NCBI RefSeq assembly: GCF_000143415.4
Contig: NW_003314262.1
Span: 2,468,603 to 2,532,602, forward strand
Direction: 5' to 3'
Length of the DNA stretch: 64,000 nt
DNA from: Selaginella moellendorffii
Lineage: Eukaryota; Plantae; Lycopodiophyta
Shown here: positions 14,511 through 61,654 of the stretch, in pieces
How positions within the stretch are numbered: the first letter of the stretch is position 1
Layout: every line of letters starts with the position of its first letter
Notes under the pieces: model-generated
The model's database searches: none
Told to the model about the DNA's origin: nothing
Seen by the model: the letters and a program-made list of their open reading frames with translations, nothing else
Made by a program: the position numbers and the translations under genes

Positions 14511-17500
14511 ATGGCGGCTACGGCGGCGATGGCGCTGGGGTTTGAGGACGGCATCCACAACGTTCACGATCCTCGTCTTCGCCCAGCGCTTCTCCAGGCC
14601 GTGATGCAGACGCATTTGCCGGAAGATCATCACCTCCACAGGTCGCAACAGGACCGGCATTTGATTGGTAGCGGGTCTCGATTGGCGCAGCTGGAATTCG
14701 CCGCGACTCTCATCCGGCGCCATGCATTGCTGTCCGAGCCCATGGCTGCTGCGGCAGTGGCGCCGGGATTGCATCCTTTCCATGGTGGCGCGGCTGCCAA
14801 AGCCGCTGCTGATGCTAGGAAATGCGCGGTGGATGCGTGGGTCGAGCGCTTGCATGGTCTTCTCTCCAGTCCGGTGGTACGCTTGTGTTGTTTCATAAGC
14901 TCCTTGTCTTATCTTTTTCCCTTAGGCTGATTCACGCTATGCGGGAGTGGGACTGCTGGGAATTACCTTTCAGGAATTTACAAGACAACGTTTTCTAGAG
15001 TCTTATGTATCATGGTTTCAGAAACTCCTTGTCCAGCTCAAGGTTTGTGAAAACATAATTGTTACACTTTTGAAACTTCTTCTCTGGCAGCCCACAGAAC
15101 CAACTTTCATCCGCGCAGCAGTCTGTGCTGCGCTTAATGATTTTCTTACGAGGTACTAGAGCTCTCTATCTTGTTCTAAGCTGATTGATTGTTTTTCAGA
15201 TTGGGAAGCTTTCTTGACTACCCGGGAGTGCGGCGCGAAGGCGCCGCTCTGGCTTCTAAGCTGGTCCAGACCCTTGTGCAGCTGCTTACTGACAAGGATT
15301 CCTGCGCAATATGGGTATGTAGAGTCATTGTCGATCGGTCAGTAAATCATTCACTGCCGCTCTTGCAGAATGAGGCTATCGATTTGTTAGCCACCGTTCT
15401 TAAGTATTTTCCGGCTTGTCTCCGACAACAATATAGTAATGTAAGTTCTTTGTGAAACTCCGTTTTTAGGCGTTTTATAATTCAAAGCTTTCAGGTTGAA
15501 AGCATTCTTGTCGCTCAAATCATGGATGCTGACGGTAATACCGCACTTTCTGAGGTATTTATTATCTATGTTTTCGAAGCGCTGGCGGCTAATTCTTTTC
15601 AAATGTTAAGGAACCAGAGGTGTGCTCGATGTTTGGCTTTACTTCCCAGAGCTCATGGCGAAGCGTCAGCATGGAGCGCAATGGTTCGTCGCATCCTCAT
15701 CGCGGTAAACTCCGAGCTCGATAGAGCCTTTCGTGGTATGGAGGAGGGTAAGGACGTCATTTTTTAAGCTGCCTGGTTTTCCTAAGTCTTCTTTGTAGTG
15801 AACGCTGCCGAAGAGGCCACTATGTCATTACAGCCCAGGGAAGGAGGGTGGCATTTTGCTGGCGCAAACATGTCCACTCAAGGAAACAAAAGGTTTTGGC
15901 AACAGTTGGTTCCACGAATATCGTCACTCTTGCAAAGCTGCCATTATCTGCTTGTCAATCCATACCCAGTCCCGGTAAGTACGAGGCAGGTTTGTTTGGA
16001 CCTCTCTTATGGTTCCCTTTGATGAAGGTGCCGGTGCCTATACTTCCTTTACTTGCATTGTCCACAAGGATCCTCAGGGTTGATGGATCTCGCTTGCCAG
16101 CAGCATCACCTCTGTGTGTGTCCGTATCAAGTGCTCATCAAACGGCTCTTTGCTCCGAACTTCCAGCATTACATCTCTGCGCATTGAATCTTCTACATTC
16201 AACCATATGCGGGGCTAGGAGGTACAGTGGACGTACTCCCATGATCTTGTGTCTTACGTTTGCTAGATTGGTCCTTGCAGTCAGCTTCTTCCACGAGCGG
16301 CCCACATTGTCCACTTATTAACTGATGCTTTCCGAAGGTGCGGAGCTGTACCACCTGTTTTGAGAGTTAAGCTTTACAGCATATCCAAGCATTTGTTGAT
16401 ATCCCTCGGTGCAGGTATTTTCGATGGTATACTGTGCATGAGTCATAGTTGTTTACTTTTTTTATCCAGGAATGGCGGAAGCACTTGCTCCTGTAGTTGT
16501 GGGTAATGCTCTATCCGACTTAAGGGGAAGCGCCTCTGGTTCTTTTGTTTTTTCTCCGAGGGGCACTCGTCCCGGAAGCACTATGTCCACCGTTGCTGCC
16601 TGGGGACCTGGGGTAAACCAGAAGAAAAGGAAGGAACCGGGTGGCGTTCCTGTAGACCATCAAGGAAATGGTGTGCCAGATGCAAGCTGTTTCAACGAAA
16701 TAGTGATCCCTGTCTCCGTACAAATCTCTGCATTGCAAGCTTTGGAAGCTTTGCTCACTGCTGTAAGCTGTTATATGCTGTTCTTTATATTATTCTAATC
16801 CTTCAATGTTACAGGGTGGTGCAATGCTTCCGGAACGTGTGCGAGCTGAAGTGGATAGTTTACTTGCAAGCATAGCAATCTTAGCTTCCTCGAAAAGCGC
16901 ATCTGGTGGCGGCTTTGATGACGAGAGCACGTCACTAGAAGGAAATCTGTCGGCGGCATCGGCTTCTTTCCAGGTCGCCGCATACAAGGCACTGCTGGCA
17001 TCTCTATTGTCACCTTGCGCTCATCGGCCTCCCTACCTTGCGCAAGGATTATCAATCTTCCGCAAAGGTATAATCTCTTCTCACGTACATTTTTAGTTTG
17101 GTTATTTATGAGAACTTCATTCAGGTCGAAAAGACGCTGGGAGCGAAGTAGCTGAAGTTTGTGCCCACGCTCTACTCGCTTTAGAAGCACTCATCCATCC
17201 TCGATGCTTGCCACCTCTGGACACTCCCGCGGCGGTGGCCTCGGGCATGGCTGCTTCTGCGGTGGCGGGGGCGAGAGGAAGTGCTTCTGGAAACCCGTCT
17301 ACTAATCCGTCAAGCACTCAGAAGCTCGCAAAGACTGCCTCGAACGCTGCTGCAAATGTTGGAGCAGTTCCAGCTGGGACTCCGCCGACGGGTATAAGCT
17401 TTGCGGCACCCTCAGCTCCTCCAGCTCCTCCAGCATTAAAGGTCAATAATCAGCTGGCTGTGGACCCGTGGGCGGAAGTAGACACTTGGCTTGGTTATGG

Positions 17501-18005
17501 AGAAGATATTGGAGAAGACTGGAGGGGATTGCTCGCTGAAGATTTGAGCGGTGAGGGGCTGGTCTTTAAAGGTGACCAACAAAGTGGTGGTGGTTCGGAG
17601 CAGCCAGCTGCGACAGCAATGGCCGAGGCTGCGGGGGACGAAGTAATTCCAATGGATCCTTTGAGATACGTGGACATCGGTATGCCTGCTACTGCAACGT
17701 CCATGTCGATTCTTTCAACACCCGGTGGCGAATTCAGCTCGTCGCCGAAGAGAGATATACTGGACGTTGCGCGTGCTCAAGTGGCAACCAGCCTGCAAAA
17801 CGACTTTCCAAGTTTTGCGCGGCTCATGGACTCTGAAGACCAGCAGCAAGACAGTGTCCCAGGTAAACAGGAGCCTTGCTCACTCTCGGAAAAGGCACCT
17901 GTTGTGGACCTCTCTAGTTTCGCTGCTTCCAAAATCACTCTAGGATCTGATTCGGAGACTGATGCGCTTCCAGACATTATCGACGGCGATCCAGACAGTG
18001 ATTGA
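14511..18005 (+). CDS. PELP1/RIX1-like ribosome biogenesis factor (multi-exon)
   Basis: N-terminal DPRLRPALL, HEAT-like exons, ELPALH, ALQALEALLT, ALEALIHPRCLP and acidic C-terminus LPDIIDGDPDSD, as in plant PELP1-like proteins. Confidence 0.8.
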
Positions 18006-18096
18006 AGTGTCAGAAGCTACTTCCGAGGTAAACTTTTTTACTTTTGTAGTTTGCATCATCGGGTATGGAGGTCATACCATTAACTTACATTTTCTT

Positions 18097-18854
18097 TCAG
18101 AAGTACCGCGCAAGGCCATCTTTCAATTTCCTGACAACGCTCTTGTTCTCTGCAGCCGGCAACTCTCCGATAACTATCAATTGCTGGACGCGGTCCACAA
18201 TGTCCGCAAGCTCTTTCTTCTTCTGCTCCTCGATCTCGGCTTTCAACTGTGGCAAGTCAGGTTTCTCTTTTTATGTGGAGTCGAGAGATAAAACAAAACT
18301 CGTGGTCGGTTTTTACCCGCTCGGCTTTTGTGAAGGAATCGGCGATGCTCTTCTCGGTGTGCTCGTGGGAGTGGGATTTGATCTTCTGGCACTCTTGCCG
18401 GGCTCTGGCCAGGAGTTTATCGACCCTCACCTGCATTCCACTTGAGATCAAGCATGGTGGAGAAGGCAATCCAATCAGTCAACCTCGGCAGAGTGGACGA
18501 GCATCTCAGCTCGCTGCTCCTCCTTTTTTCGATTCTCCAGCGCTTTGGACTCCTCCAGCATTCGCTGCCTCTCGGCTTTTCCCTGTAGAAAGAGTTCCAG
18601 AAGAGGAGGGGGATGAAGCTACACAGAAACTTGGAAGTATTTCTCGTTACTACCTGGAGCTTGAGAGCCCGTGCTTCGGCCTTGCGAGTGGCGGCTTCCA
18701 AGTAGGCCTGTGCTTCCGTCTCCACACGATTGCGGTGTGCCTCGGCGATGGCCTCGGCTCTTTGGTTGACGCCTTTGCCGATGGACGAAGCTGGGCTTCC
18801 GCACTCGCCTTCTTCTTTGCTGTACACTGCGGCTTTGCGTAGCTGCTGGGCCAT
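18097..18854 (-). CDS. Coiled-coil protein, possibly a divergent remorin C-terminal-like protein (about 4 exons)
   Basis: Spliced helical exons AQAYLEAATRKAEARALKLQ / GKAERQRMLEESK / ...AEIEEQKKKELADIVDRVQQLIVIGELP; the gene itself is fairly clear, the remorin similarity is weak. Confidence 0.5.
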
Positions 18855-19235
18855 TAGAGAGCCGGTTTATAACCAAACTCCCACCGTTATGACAGGTTAT
18901 AACAGCGTGAATCTACATTGTTGGAAGTCGTGAGTTCGATTCCCGCAAGTTAAATTTAAGAGATGCACGGTCAGAACAAACAAAAAATCCTATTATGTGC
19001 AAACCTCCCCTGAAAAACTTATAAAGCCACATGTTATTATATTCATTTAAAAATTTCGAGTTAACTTTACTTTTATAACCTTAAGATTTTTATATATTAA
19101 ATGAAATTCTATAATAATATTTAATTACAAAATTAAACTTAACTTTACCGATCTTGCTAAATATTTTTTGGCAAAAGATTTTTTTTTAAGTACTTATAAC
19201 AATGAAGAATGTAATTATTATTATAAATTGGAATA

Positions 19236-20120
19236 ATGAGAAAGATATATATATCAAACTTTGGCATACTATTGATAATAATAACAACGATTTCACAAGA
19301 TATTAATTTTCAAACAGGTGATTTTGATGTTCTATCTGAAGAAGCAGTAAATATTATTTTCCATGTTATTCAAAATGCAATTAATTCTATACCAAATAGT
19401 GTACTTCCAAGAGATCAAAGCTTCCATGGACTTTTATTACTTGTAAATCCAGGTAGAAGTACTACTTCTATTGTATATGGTATTTATGCATTACAAACAG
19501 CTGCTCAACTTTGTGGTTCAAACAATGAAGGCAATGAAGGATCTATAATTAGAAACTCATTAAATCATATTTTAGCAAGATCATATAACGAGATGAGGAA
19601 CTTTGCTGCTTCCTATATTTATATTAACACTCAACATTTTGTTATTTATTATTACATTAGAAACTATATTCCCCGTCATAATCAAATTTATGCAATAAAA
19701 CTTTTTAATTGTAACGTATTTTCAAGTATCTTAATAAGCGGGTATGTTAATATGTTATATCAATATCTATTAACAACACATTTTTTAATTTCTTCAAACC
19801 AAAAAGCATATTTATATTTAAGTAGTGATTGTAATTTAGTACTATATACTAAAAATAAAAGTTTATGGTCTACACAAACAACAAATAAGGGTACAGAATG
19901 TATATTAAGGTTACAAGAAGATGGAAATTTAGTTTTATATTCTTATAACAAAGAAGTTATTTGGGCTTCTGGTACTTATTGTAAGTATAATAATTGTTAT
20001 GAAAATGCACATTTAGTATTACAAAATAATTGTAATTTAGTATTGTATTTCTCATATCAAAAGGTATTCAGCACTAAACCCATAAAGAAAAATGTATGGA
20101 ATTCACGTACATTTTGCTAA
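19236..20120 (+). CDS. Secreted protein: signal peptide + unknown domain + C-terminal bulb-type (GNA) mannose-binding lectin
   Basis: Intronless 294 aa ORF; hydrophobic N-terminus; lectin motifs SSDCNLVLY, QEDGNLVLY and QNNCNLVLY with intervening LWS/IWAS. Confidence 0.85.
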   Translation: MRKIYISNFGILLIIITTISQDINFQTGDFDVLSEEAVNIIFHVIQNAINSIPNSVLPRDQSFHGLLLLVNPGRSTTSIVYGIYALQTAAQLCGSNNEGNEGSIIRNSLNHILARSYNEMRNFAASYIYINTQHFVIYYYIRNYIPRHNQIYAIKLFNCNVFSSILISGYVNMLYQYLLTTHFLISSNQKAYLYLSSDCNLVLYTKNKSLWSTQTTNKGTECILRLQEDGNLVLYSYNKEVIWASGTYCKYNNCYENAHLVLQNNCNLVLYFSYQKVFSTKPIKKNVWNSRTFC

Positions 20121-20915
20121 ATTATTAGCTTAATAGCTTAAGGTTTTGTAAACTAAAAATAATATGCATAGTTAATAAGAATGGATTAAATCCTCTAAAA
20201 CCAAAACCGCATAAAATATATTCTTCAGTAAATTTCTCTGAGTAAATAATTGAAGGCATTGAATAATGGATAACAAATCGTCTAAAAATAAATGTTTTAT
20301 ACCTACACAAGCCAATAATGGATAATCCACTGACTGATTTCCAACTTGAAAATAATGAGAAAGCATTCAATATGTTAATTTCATGACCACATACTATACT
20401 AATTGATACTGTTTATTATCTATGTTAAACTATCTAGTTTATACAATAGAACGATTGTTAAAGCTCATGGAAAAACTACATTGATCTCTTGATAATGTTC
20501 TTTGATCTTTCTTGGACAAATGATCACTATCCATCATCTGAAAAACTTGTCCAAGCTAAACTAGTACTTAAAATGCTTCTAAATGTTTTTAATGTTTATG
20601 GTATTTGGTATATGTAATTCAATGTTGTCCTATACCAACTCGCAGCTGCCGCTCTCCCCTCCGAGAGCGAGCAAGTGGTCCCGGTTCGTTTTGCGATCAG
20701 TTTAGCTTGTTTCCCCTAAACACTTTTAATACATATCCAGTTAATTCTTTCAATCCCATATACAGCTCTTAGGTACTTTGAAATATCCACTAGTCTGCGA
20801 GTTATTCTTGCCCGACAGTTTGTTTGGGGTCCAAACATGCATGGAGAAGAATAAGAGAAATTTAGAAATCTAGATCAGAGACGTTAATCCTCCTTAGATT
20901 TGGCTAAGTTACTGT

Positions 20916-21464
20916 TTATATGAAAATGCACATTCTCCCAGTAAGATGACCAACGAGACCTGCTTAAGAAGTGGCTAAGAAAACAAACATATCTCCAAAT
21001 ACCTGCAGTGTGGTGCCTACAATCATGCCTGTGGAGAATCAGGTCAGTAGGCCAGGAATTGTTAAACTCCACAGCAGAAGTAAGATCCAATCCAGGAAGC
21101 ATGTTGCCAACAAGCTCAATTCTGCTGGAAGGAAGCCTTGGCAGCCTTCTTTGCTGCACAATTCCTTGCAAACAATACAAATCTTATACTATTTGGAAGA
21201 AAGAAATCCAAATCTACCTGAGACTTGCTGGCCACAAATCAAGGCCAGTGCCACGAGAGGGTCCTCTGGATTCTCTGGCTGGAAATCAAACACTGTGCAC
21301 TGCTGCTTGGATTGGACAATGGTCATGTAGTGGCAAAGCTTTGTAGTTCCACTGGCTTCCACTGCGTTGATAAGCCAAGATGGAGGACCTGGAGGAACAC
21401 GAAGAGGAACTGTAGCCACATAGACTTTTGCGCAAGAACAAGACGCTGGATTGTAGAGAGCCAT
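20916..21464 (-). CDS. Conserved plant protein with permuted papain/PPPDE-like His...Cys motifs (3 exons)
   Basis: Spliced HYMTIV..FDFQPENPED..ALAL / ..FNNSWPTDLILHRHDCRHHTA / GLVGHLTG; GT-AG introns near 21214-21167 and 21003-20960. Confidence 0.65.
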
Positions 21465-21517
21465 TGCTCTCGTTTAGAAAAATCTATATACAATCACTAG
21501 TATACCACACAAATGGA

Positions 21518-24500
21518 TTAGAAATACGATGACTGAGAGTGGAGTACCTGGAGATGAGCTAAAATCCTTGCCGCCATCGGCCTCGTCACGCTGTTACCTC
21601 GCGAGGTCAGCTCGATAAGTGGCATCTGAGCCGAGCTCCCAAACTCGTTCCGGTACCTGTCGATACGGAACACCTTCTCCAGCATCCACAGCGCCTTTTC
21701 TTTCGCCTCCGGCGTTCCAAACGTGATAACTCTCACCAGGCTGCGAATCCCGCGAGCATCCGCGATGACTTTCACTCCCTTCTGCCAGATCTCGTCGTGG
21801 AGCAGCGTCGCTAGCGCAGCGAGTGCGGCTTCCTGGACTTGGGCCTCGCTCGCCTCCAGGCACTGGATCAGCGGAGCCACTGCTTTGGCCTCGAGCATGC
21901 AAAACGAGCCTCTCTCGGAGCAGTGGCCTTGGTGGAGCTCGCACCCTGTTTCTCGAGGCCGGAAGAAGCACGAGAACAATCCGGCGCTGCTTCTCGCCAC
22001 GGGCGTGGAAAGCCTTCGGGAACTCTCCGAGAACTGTGCCAGTCCTGTCGCAGCTCTCGCTCTTGCCAGTGGACTCCCCGCCGAAAGTACGTCGACCAGG
22101 CGTGACACGGCACCGTGATCAGCAGCCAGGCGTTGCAAGTCCTCCCGTGCTGGCCTTGTAAAGTGTAGTAGCACCGCCACCGAGTTCTCCACGACCGAGT
22201 CTTGGACGCTCTTTGGCATGGCTCTCGTACCCCGAACCACACCGTCCAGGAGATTTAGCGTTGGAGGAAGCGCTCCGGCTTGGAGCAGCCTCTCGATCAC
22301 TTGGTTGTCGGTTGACGGGAGGTTGCCAAGGATCCCAACGGCGGCAGCTTTTTCTTCGTCCGAGCTCCATGTAGCCGATAGTACGTCGACTAACGTCTTG
22401 AAGCTAGTCGGGCCAAGGAACTCGGATATCTCACGTCCAGAGCCATCTCCCGACAGGCAGAAGAGCAGTTTGAGAGCGTAGACTCGGACGCCAGAATCGC
22501 TGTTTTCGCAAAATGGAAGCAGCAGCTGGATGGCGTCTGCCGCTCTTAGGATGTTTCTGGCCCCTGCGGCGTCTCTAGAAGTAGCAATTCCGTAGAGTGC
22601 ACGTAGAAGATGTCCCTGGATCTCTGGCCCGGCGAGATTGAGTAGCGAAAGCAGTTGCACTAGTGTATCTTCGGATTCCAGCACCTCGTTGCTCTTGGAT
22701 GTATTCGCAGGTGACGATGCCAGATTGGCAAAAGTTGCTGCAGCTTGTTCTTTGAGCGTGACCAAGGAAGACGTGACTGAGCACAAGAGCCTGAGCAGGG
22801 AGGGGACGACGCCCGCAGCAATCATTTCGTCCCTATTGTCCGGAAGCGTTGACAAGTTTTGAAGTGCACCAAGCGCTGCAGATTTGGCTTCCAAGTTACC
22901 CAGGGAGATCATTTTCACAAGAGGACCTATAGCTCCATCCTGTGCTAATGTCGCTTTGCCTTGATCCGTAAGGCCCATTCTCGCGATCGCACTTGCCATT
23001 AAAATCTTGTCCTTGTCCGAGCCTACAAATACCAGTAAAACAGATGAAATGCCTGTTCCAAAAGAGAAACATGCATACCTTCAGCAAGCCGGACAGCAAG
23101 AGGTCTAAAGTAGTTTGCCTCGGCCATTTGTACCACGTTCTGGCTGTTGTTCGAAAGAGCATCCAGCAAAGCCGTGGCATCCTGAACAGCGCTTTCGATC
23201 TCGTTCCTCAGCGTCGCAAGCAGAAGAATGCATCCCTGAGCTTTCCCAATCTGGTCGCAAATCCTGGGAACCTTCGATAGCTCCAACAGGAGCTTGACCG
23301 CTTCCTTTCGCTCTTCACCATCTCGCGACAGCGACCTCACCGTGAGGGGCAGTGCACCTGCGTCCATTATCCTTTCCTGCCTCAAAGTGTCGCAATTTAG
23401 AGCCTTGCCTGCACAACTGAATCAGACCATCAAGGAGCAAAAGGTGACAGAGCATACCTTGTTCTCGTTGCCAGCAGCAAGGCTAGAAAGCGCAGCCAGA
23501 GTTTTCATCCTTGTAGCTCTTTGTTTGGACTCGAGCAAGCTCACTATAACCGGGAGAAGTCCAGCTTCGGCAATCCAAGTGGGGTTCCGAGGCCTCTCTT
23601 CGCTAAGCCTGTGTAGTTCCCATAGTCCAGCTTGTACCTCAGTATCCTCCTGACTCTTGATCTTTCTTCCGCAAGCCTCGATATTGTACCGCGTGCTTCT
23701 GTCTCTGGACTCCTCGATCGCAGATCTCAAAGAGTGGTTCGGCTTCAACTCGAAGCTGTCGAGCTCGACCCCAGTCACGGGGCACACAGTGTTCCCATCC
23801 CGAAACCACTTCTCAATGGCGCTCCTCTCGAAAGTCTGGCCGGAAGCAATCTCCACCGGGTCCTCCATGAGAGCTCTCGTCAGCTGGCAGTAGAAAGGCA
23901 TGTACTGCCAGTTACTCCCAGTCACTCTATGAAACTCCCCACTGCCACCATTCTTCACGTTGGCGGCGCTCAAGAGCCCAATGATCTGCTCAAGCTGATA
24001 CGCCTCGGCTCGGTTCTTCCGGAGCTCGGCCTCTTCCTTCTCCTTCTTAAACTCCTCCAGCTCCTGAGCGAGAGCGAGTGTGTTCTGAGGCACTCCAACG
24101 GACCTGGCAATCTGGAGCAGCAGATCATTCGCGAAAGCACTGTCTGTTCGTTGGTCTCGGATCCCCAGCTCGATCTTCTCCACGAGCTCCTCGTCGGCGG
24201 CAGCAGCTCGAAACTGGGCGCTTTGCATGTCCACCAAGAGCTTGGAAGTCACCTCGCGGCTGTCCACCGAGATGTTCATGCTCGCCAGTGGAATGAGGCT
24301 CAAACACCTCCCAATCTCGTGCGTGATGTCCTGGACTTGCTTGACGAGCGTCCGGCAGTGTAGAAGAAGGTAGATCCGGCTCTTCGATCCACACAACTGG
24401 ATCAACTCCTGTGCCTTCTTCATCTCCCTCTCCAGGCTCTCCAGCGAGACTCTCATCGGCGGCGTGTCCCTCACATTCTTATCGTGGAGCTCTCGCAACA

Positions 24501-24663
24501 CGGGCAAGATCTTCTCCAGGTAGCTCCCAAGCTCGCTAAAGCTCTCCCTCTCGATCAACACATCCTTGGCAGCCATGGCCGTGTCCGTTACCTGGACTAC
24601 CAATCGAGCCAGCACCTCGGAGATCGGTGCCAACACCGCATTCCCTATGCCGCCGCGCAGCAT
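21518..24663 (-). CDS. U-box/ARM E3 ubiquitin ligase, PUB43/44 (SAUL1/NOP1)-like
   Basis: U-box PFYCQLTRALMEDPVEIASGQTFERSAIEKWF..CP, ARM repeats, C-terminal ARILAHLQVLHSQSSYF. Confidence 0.9.
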
Positions 24664-24857
24664 TCTGTCCAATCCCAGAATCTCTCGCGAAATCTCTAGA
24701 ATCTAAGATCCAGAAGCATTCTTTCCTCAGATCCCAGCGAAGTCCTCCAGGAACTGGCGCTCGCTCGCTCGATCCTCACCTCGTTAATGCAATCGCCAAA
24801 CGCTGCTCGTCAAGTCAAGACCGTGTCCTCTTAAGAACCCTAAAAACAGGAGTGTTA

Positions 24858-29133: not shown

Positions 29134-29215
29134 CGCTCATCCAAGAACCCTAAAACCACAGAAAATGAAAACCCTAAAACCACCAAAAAGAAAAAGATAA
29201 TTAAAGTAGAAATTG

Positions 29216-29289
29216 CGACCACGGTGGGATTCGAACCCACGACCTTCAGATCCGAAGTCTGACGCGCTAATCCACTGCGCTACGCGGCC
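29216..29289 (-). tRNA. tRNA-Arg(UCG)
   Basis: GGCCGCG acceptor stem, anticodon arm TCAGA-CT-TCG-GA-TCTGA, T arm GGTTCGAATCC, T-run terminator ~20 nt downstream. Confidence 0.95.
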
Positions 29290-53431: not shown

Positions 53432-53969
53432 TGTAAGGGATTCCAAATGTATAGTAGGGATAGTGGTAGGTCGAATATGGCCAACCAACCTGAGGCATAG
53501 TTTAACTCCCACTTGCATGCTTGTCTTTATTTTGCGTTCGACTTAGGTTTAATCCCAAGCTCCACACCATGCTAGCTGGTGGAGTACCTATGTCCTCGTG
53601 TTAAGCCATTTGTATGCTAAAATAACATCAAATTCCATTTAACTCCGTTTTGCGTGCTTGTCCTGGCATTGGGATGCTAGATACTCTAGGACTATTTCAA
53701 GTCACTCTGTATTCCTGTCCCTTTGCTCCTTGGGCTGTGCACTCTAGAGTCACTTTGTGCTCTTATTCCTTCACTCCTTAGTTCCATACTTGGGAGTTTC
53801 ACACCATTCTTTTATTCAGTGGCCCAAGGCTTTGAAACTCAAGTTCCGCACCAGTATCCTTTGGACACGTGGCATGTGACACGTGGCACATAGAGGGTTT
53901 AGGTTCCGCTTTGTGGTTATCCTATGGTAAATCACCATAAGATAAAAGGTAAAAACCACATGCACTACA
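53432..53969. repeat. LTR-like repeat, copy 1
   Basis: TGTA...TACA termini; colinear with 59451-59966. Confidence 0.75.
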
Positions 53970-54728
53970 ATATTGTTATGTAAGAAAATTGTATTGCTTT
54001 CTTTCTTTTATAGTTGTTTGTCGCAACGTTAGTATTGCTATTTGCACATCTTTTCTTCATGGTGTATAGACTCCCTTCATATGAGGCTCATGTATCTTCT
54101 TGAGGCTGCTATCCATGGCTAGGTCAAGAGGGAGGGGAGAATGACTTAAACCATAGGAATATTCTGGAATGTCCCTAGATTGCGAATTTGGACATGGGAT
54201 GAACACCATTGTATTTAAGACAATCTCTACATTCCATAAATATGCCAAATAAGCAAATCTAGATACTTTCCATAAATAACATTTAGGACCAAATTGAGAC
54301 TAACGCAAAAGGTATGATAGTGAAGATGTTTAGCAGACACGGTAAACTATCATTTAACGAATATTAAGGGACCAATCTCAATATCGCAGGGGTTCTTAAT
54401 ACTAGCAAGTGCAAGCCAATGACAAAAGTTTCTCAAACTAGGCTGAGTACAGCAAGAAACACATAGGGTTCCTACCTTATGTTTATCCGATTTAAGTGCA
54501 CGGTTATTGACCAATTTTTTAACTAGCTCAAGTGGGAACTGATAACGGGTCCAACAATACCAACCTCCTGTCATCATGGCAGTAAGGAAAGAATATCTGA
54601 AAGAACTAGCCAACAGGTAACTTTCGATACTCGAAGTCATATTCGCGACAAATATAATTATAGAAATAAGAGAATGAAAGTAGAACAAATGGCTCAAATC
54701 ATATAGCAATATGGCTATAAAACTTAAT

Positions 54729-59450: not shown

Positions 59451-59966
59451 TGTAGGGGATTTCAAATATATAATAGAGATAGTGGGTAAATCAAGTATGG
59501 CTGACCTAAGATATAGTTTAGTTCTCACTTGTGTGTCTATCTTTGTTTTGGATCTAGTTTAGGTTTAAACCCAAGTTTCACATCATGTTAACTAATGGAG
59601 TAGTTATATCCTCATGTTAAACCACTAGTATGCTGAAATAGTGCTATACCTCATTTAGCTCTATTTTATATGTTAGTCCTAGCATTGGGATATTGGAAGT
59701 TCTAGGATTGTTTCAATGCTGTTCTGTGCTTCTATCCTTTCGCTCTTTAGGCTAAATGCTCAGGAGTGGCTTCGTGCTCTAGTTAGCTTCTTGGTTGCAA
59801 GTTTGGGAGTTTGGCTCTGTTCCTTCATTCAATGGCTCAAGGCCTTGAAACTTGGATTCCTCTCCACTATCTTTAGACACGTGGCATATAGAGGGCTAGG
59901 TTTTGCTTTGTGGTTATCCTATAGTAAATCACTATAGGATATAAGATGAAAACCACATGAACTACA
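59451..59966. repeat. LTR-like repeat, copy 2, followed by an inverted partial copy (~59989-60130)
   Basis: TGTAG...CTACA termini; diverged from copy 1 largely by transitions. Confidence 0.75.
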
Positions 59967-60760
59967 GTAACTAGTCTTTTATGTATAAAACTAAGAAGTG
60001 AAGGAAATGACATATGAAACTACTCTTGAGCATATAGCCCAAAGAGTGAAGGAGCATGAGCATAAAGCGATATAGGAACAATTCTAGAGCGTTCAACATC
60101 TCAATGCTAATATTAACATACAAAGCAAAACCATTCCAAGTAAATTATCATCTGATAAACTAATATAGTAGAGGAATTACCAAGATCACTTAAGATTAAC
60201 CATCTAACAAAATTCAATAGCAAGTGTATTATAAAGAAACACTCAATGATAATAACTATCAAATATTGTAGACAATATATTAAATAACTTAGGAAAGGCA
60301 ACTTAAAGAATACAAAGTATCATTGATAGATAAATAAAATGTTAACAAATGTATCACTTGAAGAAAATAACATTTTAATACATCAAAACTAAATTAAGCA
60401 ATAATCCACAAAATAGAAAGAAATGTTTTAGGTAATAAAGAAACAAAATTATTTTTTAAATTAAATTATAATCATATATATAAACAATAGTGTAAAATCC
60501 ATTTAATTAGCAATAGTGAAAGAAATTTACAACAAGAAACTTTTCTTGTTTTGTTTTTGCTTTAGCCACTGCCATTTGTTACATCTACAAATGATATATT
60601 CTCACTACTTTATAAAATAACTATATTATAATCATATCCTATCATATCTCTCATATCTTATATATATAATCATATGCTATTCTATCAAAACTTAAAGTCC
60701 TAAATTTATCACTTATTTATTTTCTTTATAGATTTCTTTATAGTATAAATCAACTTTATA

Positions 60761-61654
60761 ATGTTTCTTAGAATATTTTTATTTCTTTTCCAATTTATTT
60801 CAAGTTTTGGAAAAAAATCAGAAATAAAATTTGGAAATATAAATTTTTTAACTGAAAATGAAGTTGGAATGATTATTGATGAAGGATATGCACGTCTATT
60901 ATCACATATCAAATCAAGAAAGCACCCATATTCTTCAACCTACCACAACGTATTTATTGTAGAATATAAAAGAATAACTGCAGTTTTTCTATTTCAACGT
61001 TTAGAAGGTAATCCACCTATATGTTCATCAGGGATGTCAAATAATATAACTTATGGAGGTGCATTAAGAACTGCTTTAAAACGTATATATAAACAGTATC
61101 ATAAATCTATAATGAAAGCACGTGCTGAAGAATGTACCATAACATCAGATTATTATAATTTTGAGTATAATGTTTTTTCCAAAGAAGAAGATAACAATTT
61201 ACTTGAGAAAAAAAGATTTGAAGATACTACCTTAAGTGGAACATCATATATTTGTGATTTATCATTAACAACTTTGAGTGCTGGATTTAGCAATAATAAA
61301 CTTTATACTAGTCAATATATAATTTCTACAAATAGAGAGAATATTTTATTAGTAACATCAAATTGTAAAATTTCTCTCTATTCTAAGAAAGAAAGGTTAT
61401 GGACTTCTGACAATATAAATGAATATTTTGGTGTATGCATACTTATTTTACAAAATGATGGTCATCTTGTATTATATACAGAAAATAAAATAGTAATGTG
61501 GTCTACTAAAAAATTTTGTATAAATTGTTTGTTGTTCACTTTTCTAACAATAAAAAATGATTGTAATATGATTATATATAAATCAGAAGCACCAAATTCA
61601 GTCTGGTGGGCATTGAATACTAAATCTTTAAACAATATTAATAAGAAATTTTAA
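60761..61654 (+). CDS. Secreted protein: signal peptide + unknown domain + bulb-type lectin; paralog of 19236-20120
   Basis: Intronless 297 aa ORF; signal MFLRIFLFLFQFISSFG; lectin motifs TSNCKISLY, QNDGHLVLY and KNDCNMIIY. Confidence 0.82.
   Translation: MFLRIFLFLFQFISSFGKKSEIKFGNINFLTENEVGMIIDEGYARLLSHIKSRKHPYSSTYHNVFIVEYKRITAVFLFQRLEGNPPICSSGMSNNITYGGALRTALKRIYKQYHKSIMKARAEECTITSDYYNFEYNVFSKEEDNNLLEKKRFEDTTLSGTSYICDLSLTTLSAGFSNNKLYTSQYIISTNRENILLVTSNCKISLYSKKERLWTSDNINEYFGVCILILQNDGHLVLYTENKIVMWSTKKFCINCLLFTFLTIKNDCNMIIYKSEAPNSVWWALNTKSLNNINKKF

Follow-up and report, generated by a model that had tools for sequence, protein, structure and literature searches.

We identified, in a window of 64,000 nt of Selaginella moellendorffii DNA (contig NW_003314262.1), an intronless open reading frame of 294 codons (19236..20120, plus strand; copy 1) which we regard, with somewhat better than even confidence, as a functional, normally silent Selaginella gene, specific to that lineage, whose product is a secreted chimeric lectin. 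The encoded protein of 294 amino acids joins a putative signal peptide to an N-terminal domain of ~150 residues without detectable relatives outside its own gene family (the N-domain), followed by a GNA-type lectin domain, and a diverged paralog of the same architecture (copy 2) lies in the same window. The ORF of copy 1 begins with the first ATG, which follows an in-frame stop by 3 codons, and has a GC content of 26%, distributed over the three codon positions as 31/32/15% (GC1/2/3). Whereas the five other frames contain 19-36 stops, its own has 0. Not one of 20000 shuffles of the ORF remained open, and the analytic probability that its 294 codons stay open at their own composition, P(open), is 2e-12. 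A sequence-only reading of this DNA had pointed to an AT-rich, fully open and intronless 294-codon ORF, and that description held in full, including its exact coordinates.

Copy 1 lies in an AT-rich block of only ~1.6 kb (~18940..20500) with sharp edges, in which GC content is 20-28% as compared with 54-62% in the flanks. The upstream part of the block (18950..19235, plus strand, 21% GC) is presumed to hold the promoter and 5' UTR, and the downstream part (20121..20500, plus strand, 26% GC) the 3' UTR and terminator. No upstream motif was conserved between copies 1 and 2 beyond AT-richness as such. The string TATAAAT does occur 8-11 nt before the ATG in both copies (19222-19228 and 60744-60750); being too near the ATG for a standard TATA box at that start, it may be a chance occurrence in AT-rich DNA. 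A search for RNA families in the block found none, and the ends of 18940..20500 show neither convincing terminal repeats, whether inverted or direct, nor a target-site duplication or poly(A) tract. We rejected copy 1 as a processed retrogene or as transposon cargo, given the lack of terminal repeats and the dissimilar flanks of copies 1 and 2. A tRNA-like T-arm motif (GTTCGATTCCCGC) marks the left edge of the block, where the 3' UTR of the left neighbouring gene ends (18900-18945); neither ARAGORN nor Rfam called a tRNA at this position, and the motif may be what is left of a SINE or a tRNA. The copy 1 gene is unannotated, and the proteins of the window are missing from protein collections. 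The other large ORFs of the window are ordinary plant genes, encoding PPR, U-box/ARM, AAA ATPase, lipoyl E2 subunit, SAM synthetase and DEAH helicase proteins, and no long ORF other than copies 1 and 2 lies in AT-rich DNA anywhere in the window. A PPR protein of the window had PPR proteins of S. moellendorffii as its top matches, none of them near-identical. The minus strand also carries an intact tRNA-Arg(TCG) gene at 29215-29289 (69.7 bits).

The first 20 residues of copy 1 (19236..19295, plus strand) form a predicted signal peptide composed of MRK, a hydrophobic core and a plausible cleavage site, TIS|QD. Mean hydropathy over residues 5-18 is 1.82, AlphaFold places a helix at residues 7-19, and no transmembrane-like segment follows later in the protein. 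The N-terminus of copy 2 is built in the same way (MFLR, core, SFG|KK), with small residues preceding the plausible cleavage site in both copies, so the signal peptide of the sequence-only reading is borne out as a prediction from sequence and hydropathy in both proteins.

The C-terminal domain of copy 1 (residues 171-294; 19746..20117, plus strand) is a member of the GNA (B_lectin, beta-prism II) family by sequence and by fold. Pfam PF01453 (B_lectin) matched with E 2e-13 and 51.1 bits, well over its cut-off of 32.4, and sequence matches in the PDB were to 1dlp, 1xd6 and 1xd5 (SCAfet, gastrodianin) with E values of 1e-18 to 1e-16. With a 42-row alignment, AlphaFold modelled residues 160-294 with pLDDT mostly >90, and a Foldseek search of the lectin part against the PDB gave E 2e-10 and TMt values of 0.87-0.91 to 1xd5/1niv/1msa (gastrodianin, snowdrop lectin). 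The best matches of the lectin domain are to plants, at 39-49% identity. There is exactly one canonical mannose-binding motif of the form QxDxNxVxY, Q227-E-D-G-N-L-V-L-Y235 (19914..19940, plus strand), as the sequence-only reading had noticed. Two further sugar motifs retain four of the five key residues, namely SSDCNLVLY from residue 196 (19821..19847, plus strand) and QNNCNLVLY from residue 263 (20022..20048, plus strand). By this three-motif count copy 1 has one 5/5 and two 4/5 sites, and copy 2 has one 4/5, one 3/5 and one eroded site, all canonical sugar motifs having been lost in the latter. Each copy contains 8 cysteines, several of which align between the two.

The N-domain of copy 1 (residues 21-170; 19296..19745, plus strand) gave no match from any source when it was searched alone by profile and homology methods, as the sequence-only reading had proposed for this domain it could not recognise. 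Nothing was found in Pfam at E<=10, nor in NCBIfam or PHROGs, where the PHROGs matches cover the lectin part only, and the PDB sequence profile search returned nothing better than E 1.2 (PfEMP1, judged to be noise). A word search limited to residues 22-172 likewise returned none at E<=10. In an exhaustive HMMER profile search with the N-domain against 1.84 billion representative proteins there was no credible relative; the lone match (P0104) is a low-complexity translation repeated 5x, aligned over a 30-residue stretch, and was set aside as spurious. IMG/VR and the JGI metagenomes contained no relatives of the N-domain, and ESM Atlas features, at 0.77 for copy 1 and with nothing usable for copy 2, were taken as negative. 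The possibility that the N-domain is a degenerate second lectin was rejected, as hhalign gave a probability of 0.1% against the lectin profile. AlphaFold assigned residues 21-160 a pLDDT <60 both in a single-sequence run (pLDDT 34) and with the 42-row alignment, which rescued the lectin domain only. Helices at 35-50 and 101-121 recur across both runs at low confidence and are not trustworthy. The N-domain contains 2 cysteines in copy 1 (C93, C159) and 3 in copy 2. The description of a domain of unrecognised type fused to a GNA lectin is thus supported.

Copy 2 (60761..61654, plus strand) encodes 297 amino acids and lies 41.5 kb from copy 1 in its own block of 24% GC beside decayed repeats, within a 12-kb AT-rich stretch without other ORFs. 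Its ORF has 25% GC, a GC3 of 14% and a P(open) of 3e-13. The two proteins are 26% identical over their full length (BLASTP E 1e-22), which establishes the paralog that had been seen by eye some 41 kb away. The Pfam B_lectin score of copy 2 is 20.4 bits, below the 32.4 cut-off, and the protein aligns to copy 1 over the whole lectin domain. In a lectin tree the two copies are sisters with 96/91 support on a long separate stem, and the branch leading to copy 2 is 10x that of copy 1. The N-domains are far less alike, with 16% identity and a BLASTP E value of 15 when compared alone. Their collinear alignment score lies above that of shuffled sequences (z = 3.1-4.2) and was reached by 8-19 of 2000 shuffles, which suggests that the two N-domains may share common descent. 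The by-eye alignment of these domains in the sequence-only reading is weak when taken by itself. No DNA similarity was found between the flanks of copies 1 and 2. Just to the left of copy 2 lies a 73-nt direct repeat (53900-53972 and 59897-59969; 6 kb apart, 86% identity) whose two units differ chiefly by transitions and probably represent the LTRs of an old retrotransposon.

Expression was assessed in three stranded S. moellendorffii RNA-seq runs, with ~12% of each run mapped to 17200..23100. Copy 1 is silent in this RNA. Depth was zero across 18973..20745 in the three runs, except for a trace of 0.01 in one run, while both neighbours were transcribed. The left neighbour (plus strand) carries a GT..AG intron at 18025..18099 and is covered at ~5-30x to ~18,950, depth being 0 from ~18973; the right neighbour, a U-box/ARM gene (21518-24669, minus strand), is expressed at ~10-46x. 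The two expressed genes around copy 1 therefore converge, each with its 3' end toward it. Nor did words of the copy 1 block occur in ~18 older S. moellendorffii runs that are probably RNA. Part of the block is present in two small runs of unknown type, in one of them as a 775-nt contig identical to 19377..20151. The sequence-only reading had held that a lack of expression would speak against its proposal; the three runs gave zero reads, and conservation of the ORF argues against neutrality.

Two observations concern the flanking genes themselves. The N-terminal part of the U-box and armadillo-repeat gene matches MCAfunc at 34.7 bits (cut-off 35) and RPW8 weakly, and this head may be a cell-death-type helical head placed on an E3 ligase. 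RNA reads at 17200-18970 and 21500-23100 carry alternative bases at ~50% frequency every 30-100 nt, and reads from the left flanking gene show a 3-nt deletion at 17584; such variant reads in both flanking genes suggest two haplotypes or very close paralogues of the region.

Base composition bears on whether copy 1 is native to the plant. In annotated S. moellendorffii genes GC3 averages 61% and mostly lies between 0.35 and 0.95 (PMC11276031). The GC3 of both ORFs, at 14-15%, is far outside this range and is lower even than the GC content of the non-coding sequence around them in the block (20-27%). FYMINK residues make up 40-42% of the two proteins as compared with 24% in 40 homologous lectin domains, and GARP residues account for 6-7% of the lectin part as compared with 25% in the homologous domains. 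Since the proteins themselves have shifted toward AT-codon residues, the AT pressure must be old. The CpG observed/expected ratio is 0.21-0.49 in the blocks, 0.25-0.49 in AT-rich repeat regions of the window and 0.81-1.07 in expressed genes, and the depletion in the blocks is accompanied by a mild excess of TpG/CpA. Judged from these dinucleotide counts, CpG depletion is the signature of methylated-cytosine decay, which is common to native silent DNA.

If instead the family had arrived by horizontal transfer from an AT-rich donor, such as a large DNA virus, an amoeba or an AT-rich bacterium, and had then spread, its AT-richness, intronless structure and silence would simply be traits of that donor. 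A composition so far from that of host genes, the missing expression and the sharp bounds of the block fit such an origin, and block edges this sharp between two active genes look more like an insertion than like local decay. The position of the pair in the lectin tree, on its long stem and away from the one annotated Selaginella B-lectin sampled, points the same way, and there is a precedent in a virus-derived gene family that has propagated in S. moellendorffii and whose ORFs predictors miss (PMC4083422). Against it, the lectin tree identified no donor and none was found for the N-domain among the 1.84 billion proteins, in IMG/VR or in the JGI metagenomes, native repeat DNA is as depleted in CpG as the blocks are, the best lectin matches are to plants, no mobile-element ends were seen, and copies 1 and 2, which occupy separate blocks, diverged long ago. 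Because the CpG depletion resembles that of transposon-rich DNA in the window, and because there are neither repeats at the block ends nor a donor, we favour a native, long-methylated gene and consider a foreign origin unlikely. An NCLDV insert in particular was rejected: IMG/VR contains no relative, PHROGs matches are confined to the lectin part, each block contains a single ORF, and the neighbours are plant genes. No link emerged to the giant-virus inserts known from this plant (PMC4083422).

A second alternative takes the ORFs for dead relics whose frames are still open by chance. Since the two copies are saturated at synonymous sites, a same-codon test and ORF-preservation statistics took the place of dN/dS. 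At the 66 positions where both copies carry the same degenerate residue, the same codon was used in 38, as compared with 35.9 expected if codon choice had been randomised. The duplication is thus ancient, and a frame released from selection should have been interrupted, as ~1/11 of random codons in such DNA are stops. Both frames are open all the same, with the P(open) values given above for copies 1 and 2 at their own compositions. Nucleotide identity between the copies at codon positions 1/2/3 is 0.46/0.59/0.45, where chance gives 0.30/0.28/0.38, so that conservation clearly exceeds chance at positions 1 and 2 but not at position 3. Randomised synonymous sites together with two open frames require long purifying selection in both lineages, and open frames despite saturation are the main argument against a dead relic; the cysteine counts, which are even and partly aligned, argue in the same direction. 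What speaks for a relic is the absence of RNA, the lack of annotation and of any entry in protein collections, the heterochromatin-like composition, and copy 2 with its eroded motifs and 10x longer branch. On balance we hold a relic to be very unlikely. The same saturation affects the claim of the sequence-only reading that the paralogs evolve fast, as rapid change is not separable here from great age.

The least probable of the explanations we weighed is the proposal of the sequence-only reading that copy 1 is a toxin of the A-B type, antimicrobial or insecticidal, whose lectin would direct a KP6/KP4-like alpha/beta domain to its target. In its favour are the secreted-type protein of two domains, one of them a terminal lectin, the precedent of lectin-targeted toxins (LlpA bacteriocins, type-2 RIPs) and a mixture of helix and strand that low-confidence AlphaFold models suggest for the N-domain. 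Neither the killer-toxin fold nor the toxin role has support: there is no Pfam, PDB, sequence or profile match to a toxin family, the N-domain has a pLDDT <60 and only 2-3 cysteines, and hence no disulfide richness, it is no second lectin, the LLB_putidacin match is confined to the lectin part, and no expression was seen.

We therefore return to copy 1 as a functional, normally silent gene of the Selaginella lineage. This reading is supported by the coding pattern of GC1/2/3, by the intact lectin fold and by the second copy with the same architecture; the missing transcript, a GC3 beyond the host range and under the GC content of the block's non-coding parts, the sharp bounds of the block and the lost motifs of copy 2 count against it. 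The protein would enter the secretory pathway by way of its predicted signal peptide, and the lectin domain would anchor it to mannose-containing glycans on the surface of a microbe, of a herbivore or of the plant itself. The family-specific N-domain would then supply activity or specificity. We envisage that the gene lies silent in methylated chromatin except at a stage or under a stress outside the RNA sampled, and that methylation-driven C-to-T decay acting throughout its history, filtered by selection on the protein, could have produced both the extreme AT content and the richness in AT-codon residues.

A bolder extension of this reading, which we also consider unlikely, is that copies 1 and 2 belong to a hidden compartment of the genome made up of methylated mini-blocks of extreme AT content, each holding one conditional, fast-diversifying gene for a secreted lectin-effector, with the N-domain representing a new fold used in defence or reproductive recognition. 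Such a compartment would be a plant counterpart of the fungal 'two-speed genome', invisible to predictors trained on GC-rich genes. Three features of the family are unusual: a partner domain without a detectable relative among so many proteins, genes with a GC3 of ~15% (host mean 61%) kept open through saturating divergence, and their absence from annotation combined with silence in the sampled RNA. Should the genes prove inducible, they would add a new class to the defence or recognition proteins of plants, and S. moellendorffii, a model lycophyte, would be shown to possess genes of a base composition that standard annotation overlooks.

Among known systems, the GNA/gastrodianin (GAFP) lectins are matched by the C-terminal 124 residues of copy 1, which share the beta-prism II fold and 29-35% identity with most of the best chains, and further by the Cys pair of the first subdomain, the signal peptide and the intronless gene, GNA-type lectin genes being intronless. 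Copy 1 differs from them in its ~150-aa N-domain, in having only one of three sugar sites canonical, in the extra cysteines C249, C254, C266 and C294, in a coding sequence of 26% GC and in the lack of detected expression. The LlpA bacteriocins (putidacin L1, pyocin L1) resemble copy 1 as secreted proteins of ~280 aa with a C-terminal B-lectin. Whereas LlpA proteins are tandem B-lectins, the N-terminal half of copy 1 is no lectin, and the match to NCBIfam NF033557 (LLB_putidacin) covers residues 192-270 with 49.6 bits against a cut-off of 275; we rejected an LlpA-type bacteriocin on this score and on the hhalign result for the N-domain. The KP4 and KP6 killer toxins are small, disulfide-rich domains, in contrast to an N-domain of ~150 aa with 2-3 cysteines.

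Fungal effector genes in AT-rich isochores, for example AvrLm of Leptosphaeria maculans, encode small secreted proteins with few or no homologues, lie in repeat-associated DNA, and are silent and subject to C-to-T decay. In behaviour this is the nearest analogy: copy 1 appears similar to the L. maculans AvrLm effectors in its secreted-type product, its few relatives and its AT-biased silent DNA, an analogy that was checked on the side of base composition (AT bias, CpG depletion, silence). It differs from them in having a plant host without RIP machinery, in the small size of its block and in its location in a gene-rich stretch. In architecture copy 1 can be compared with the GNA chimerolectins of plants, for which surveys list kinase, glycosyl hydrolase, peptidase M11 or EGF domains as partners of the GNA domain (PMC6362431). 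The partner domain of copy 1, unlike theirs, is no listed or Pfam-known domain, and its family is absent from the annotated sets surveyed. Like these proteins, copy 1 joins a GNA domain to a second domain (PMC6362431), and since fusions of GNA to other domains are well known, its domain layout varies a familiar pattern.
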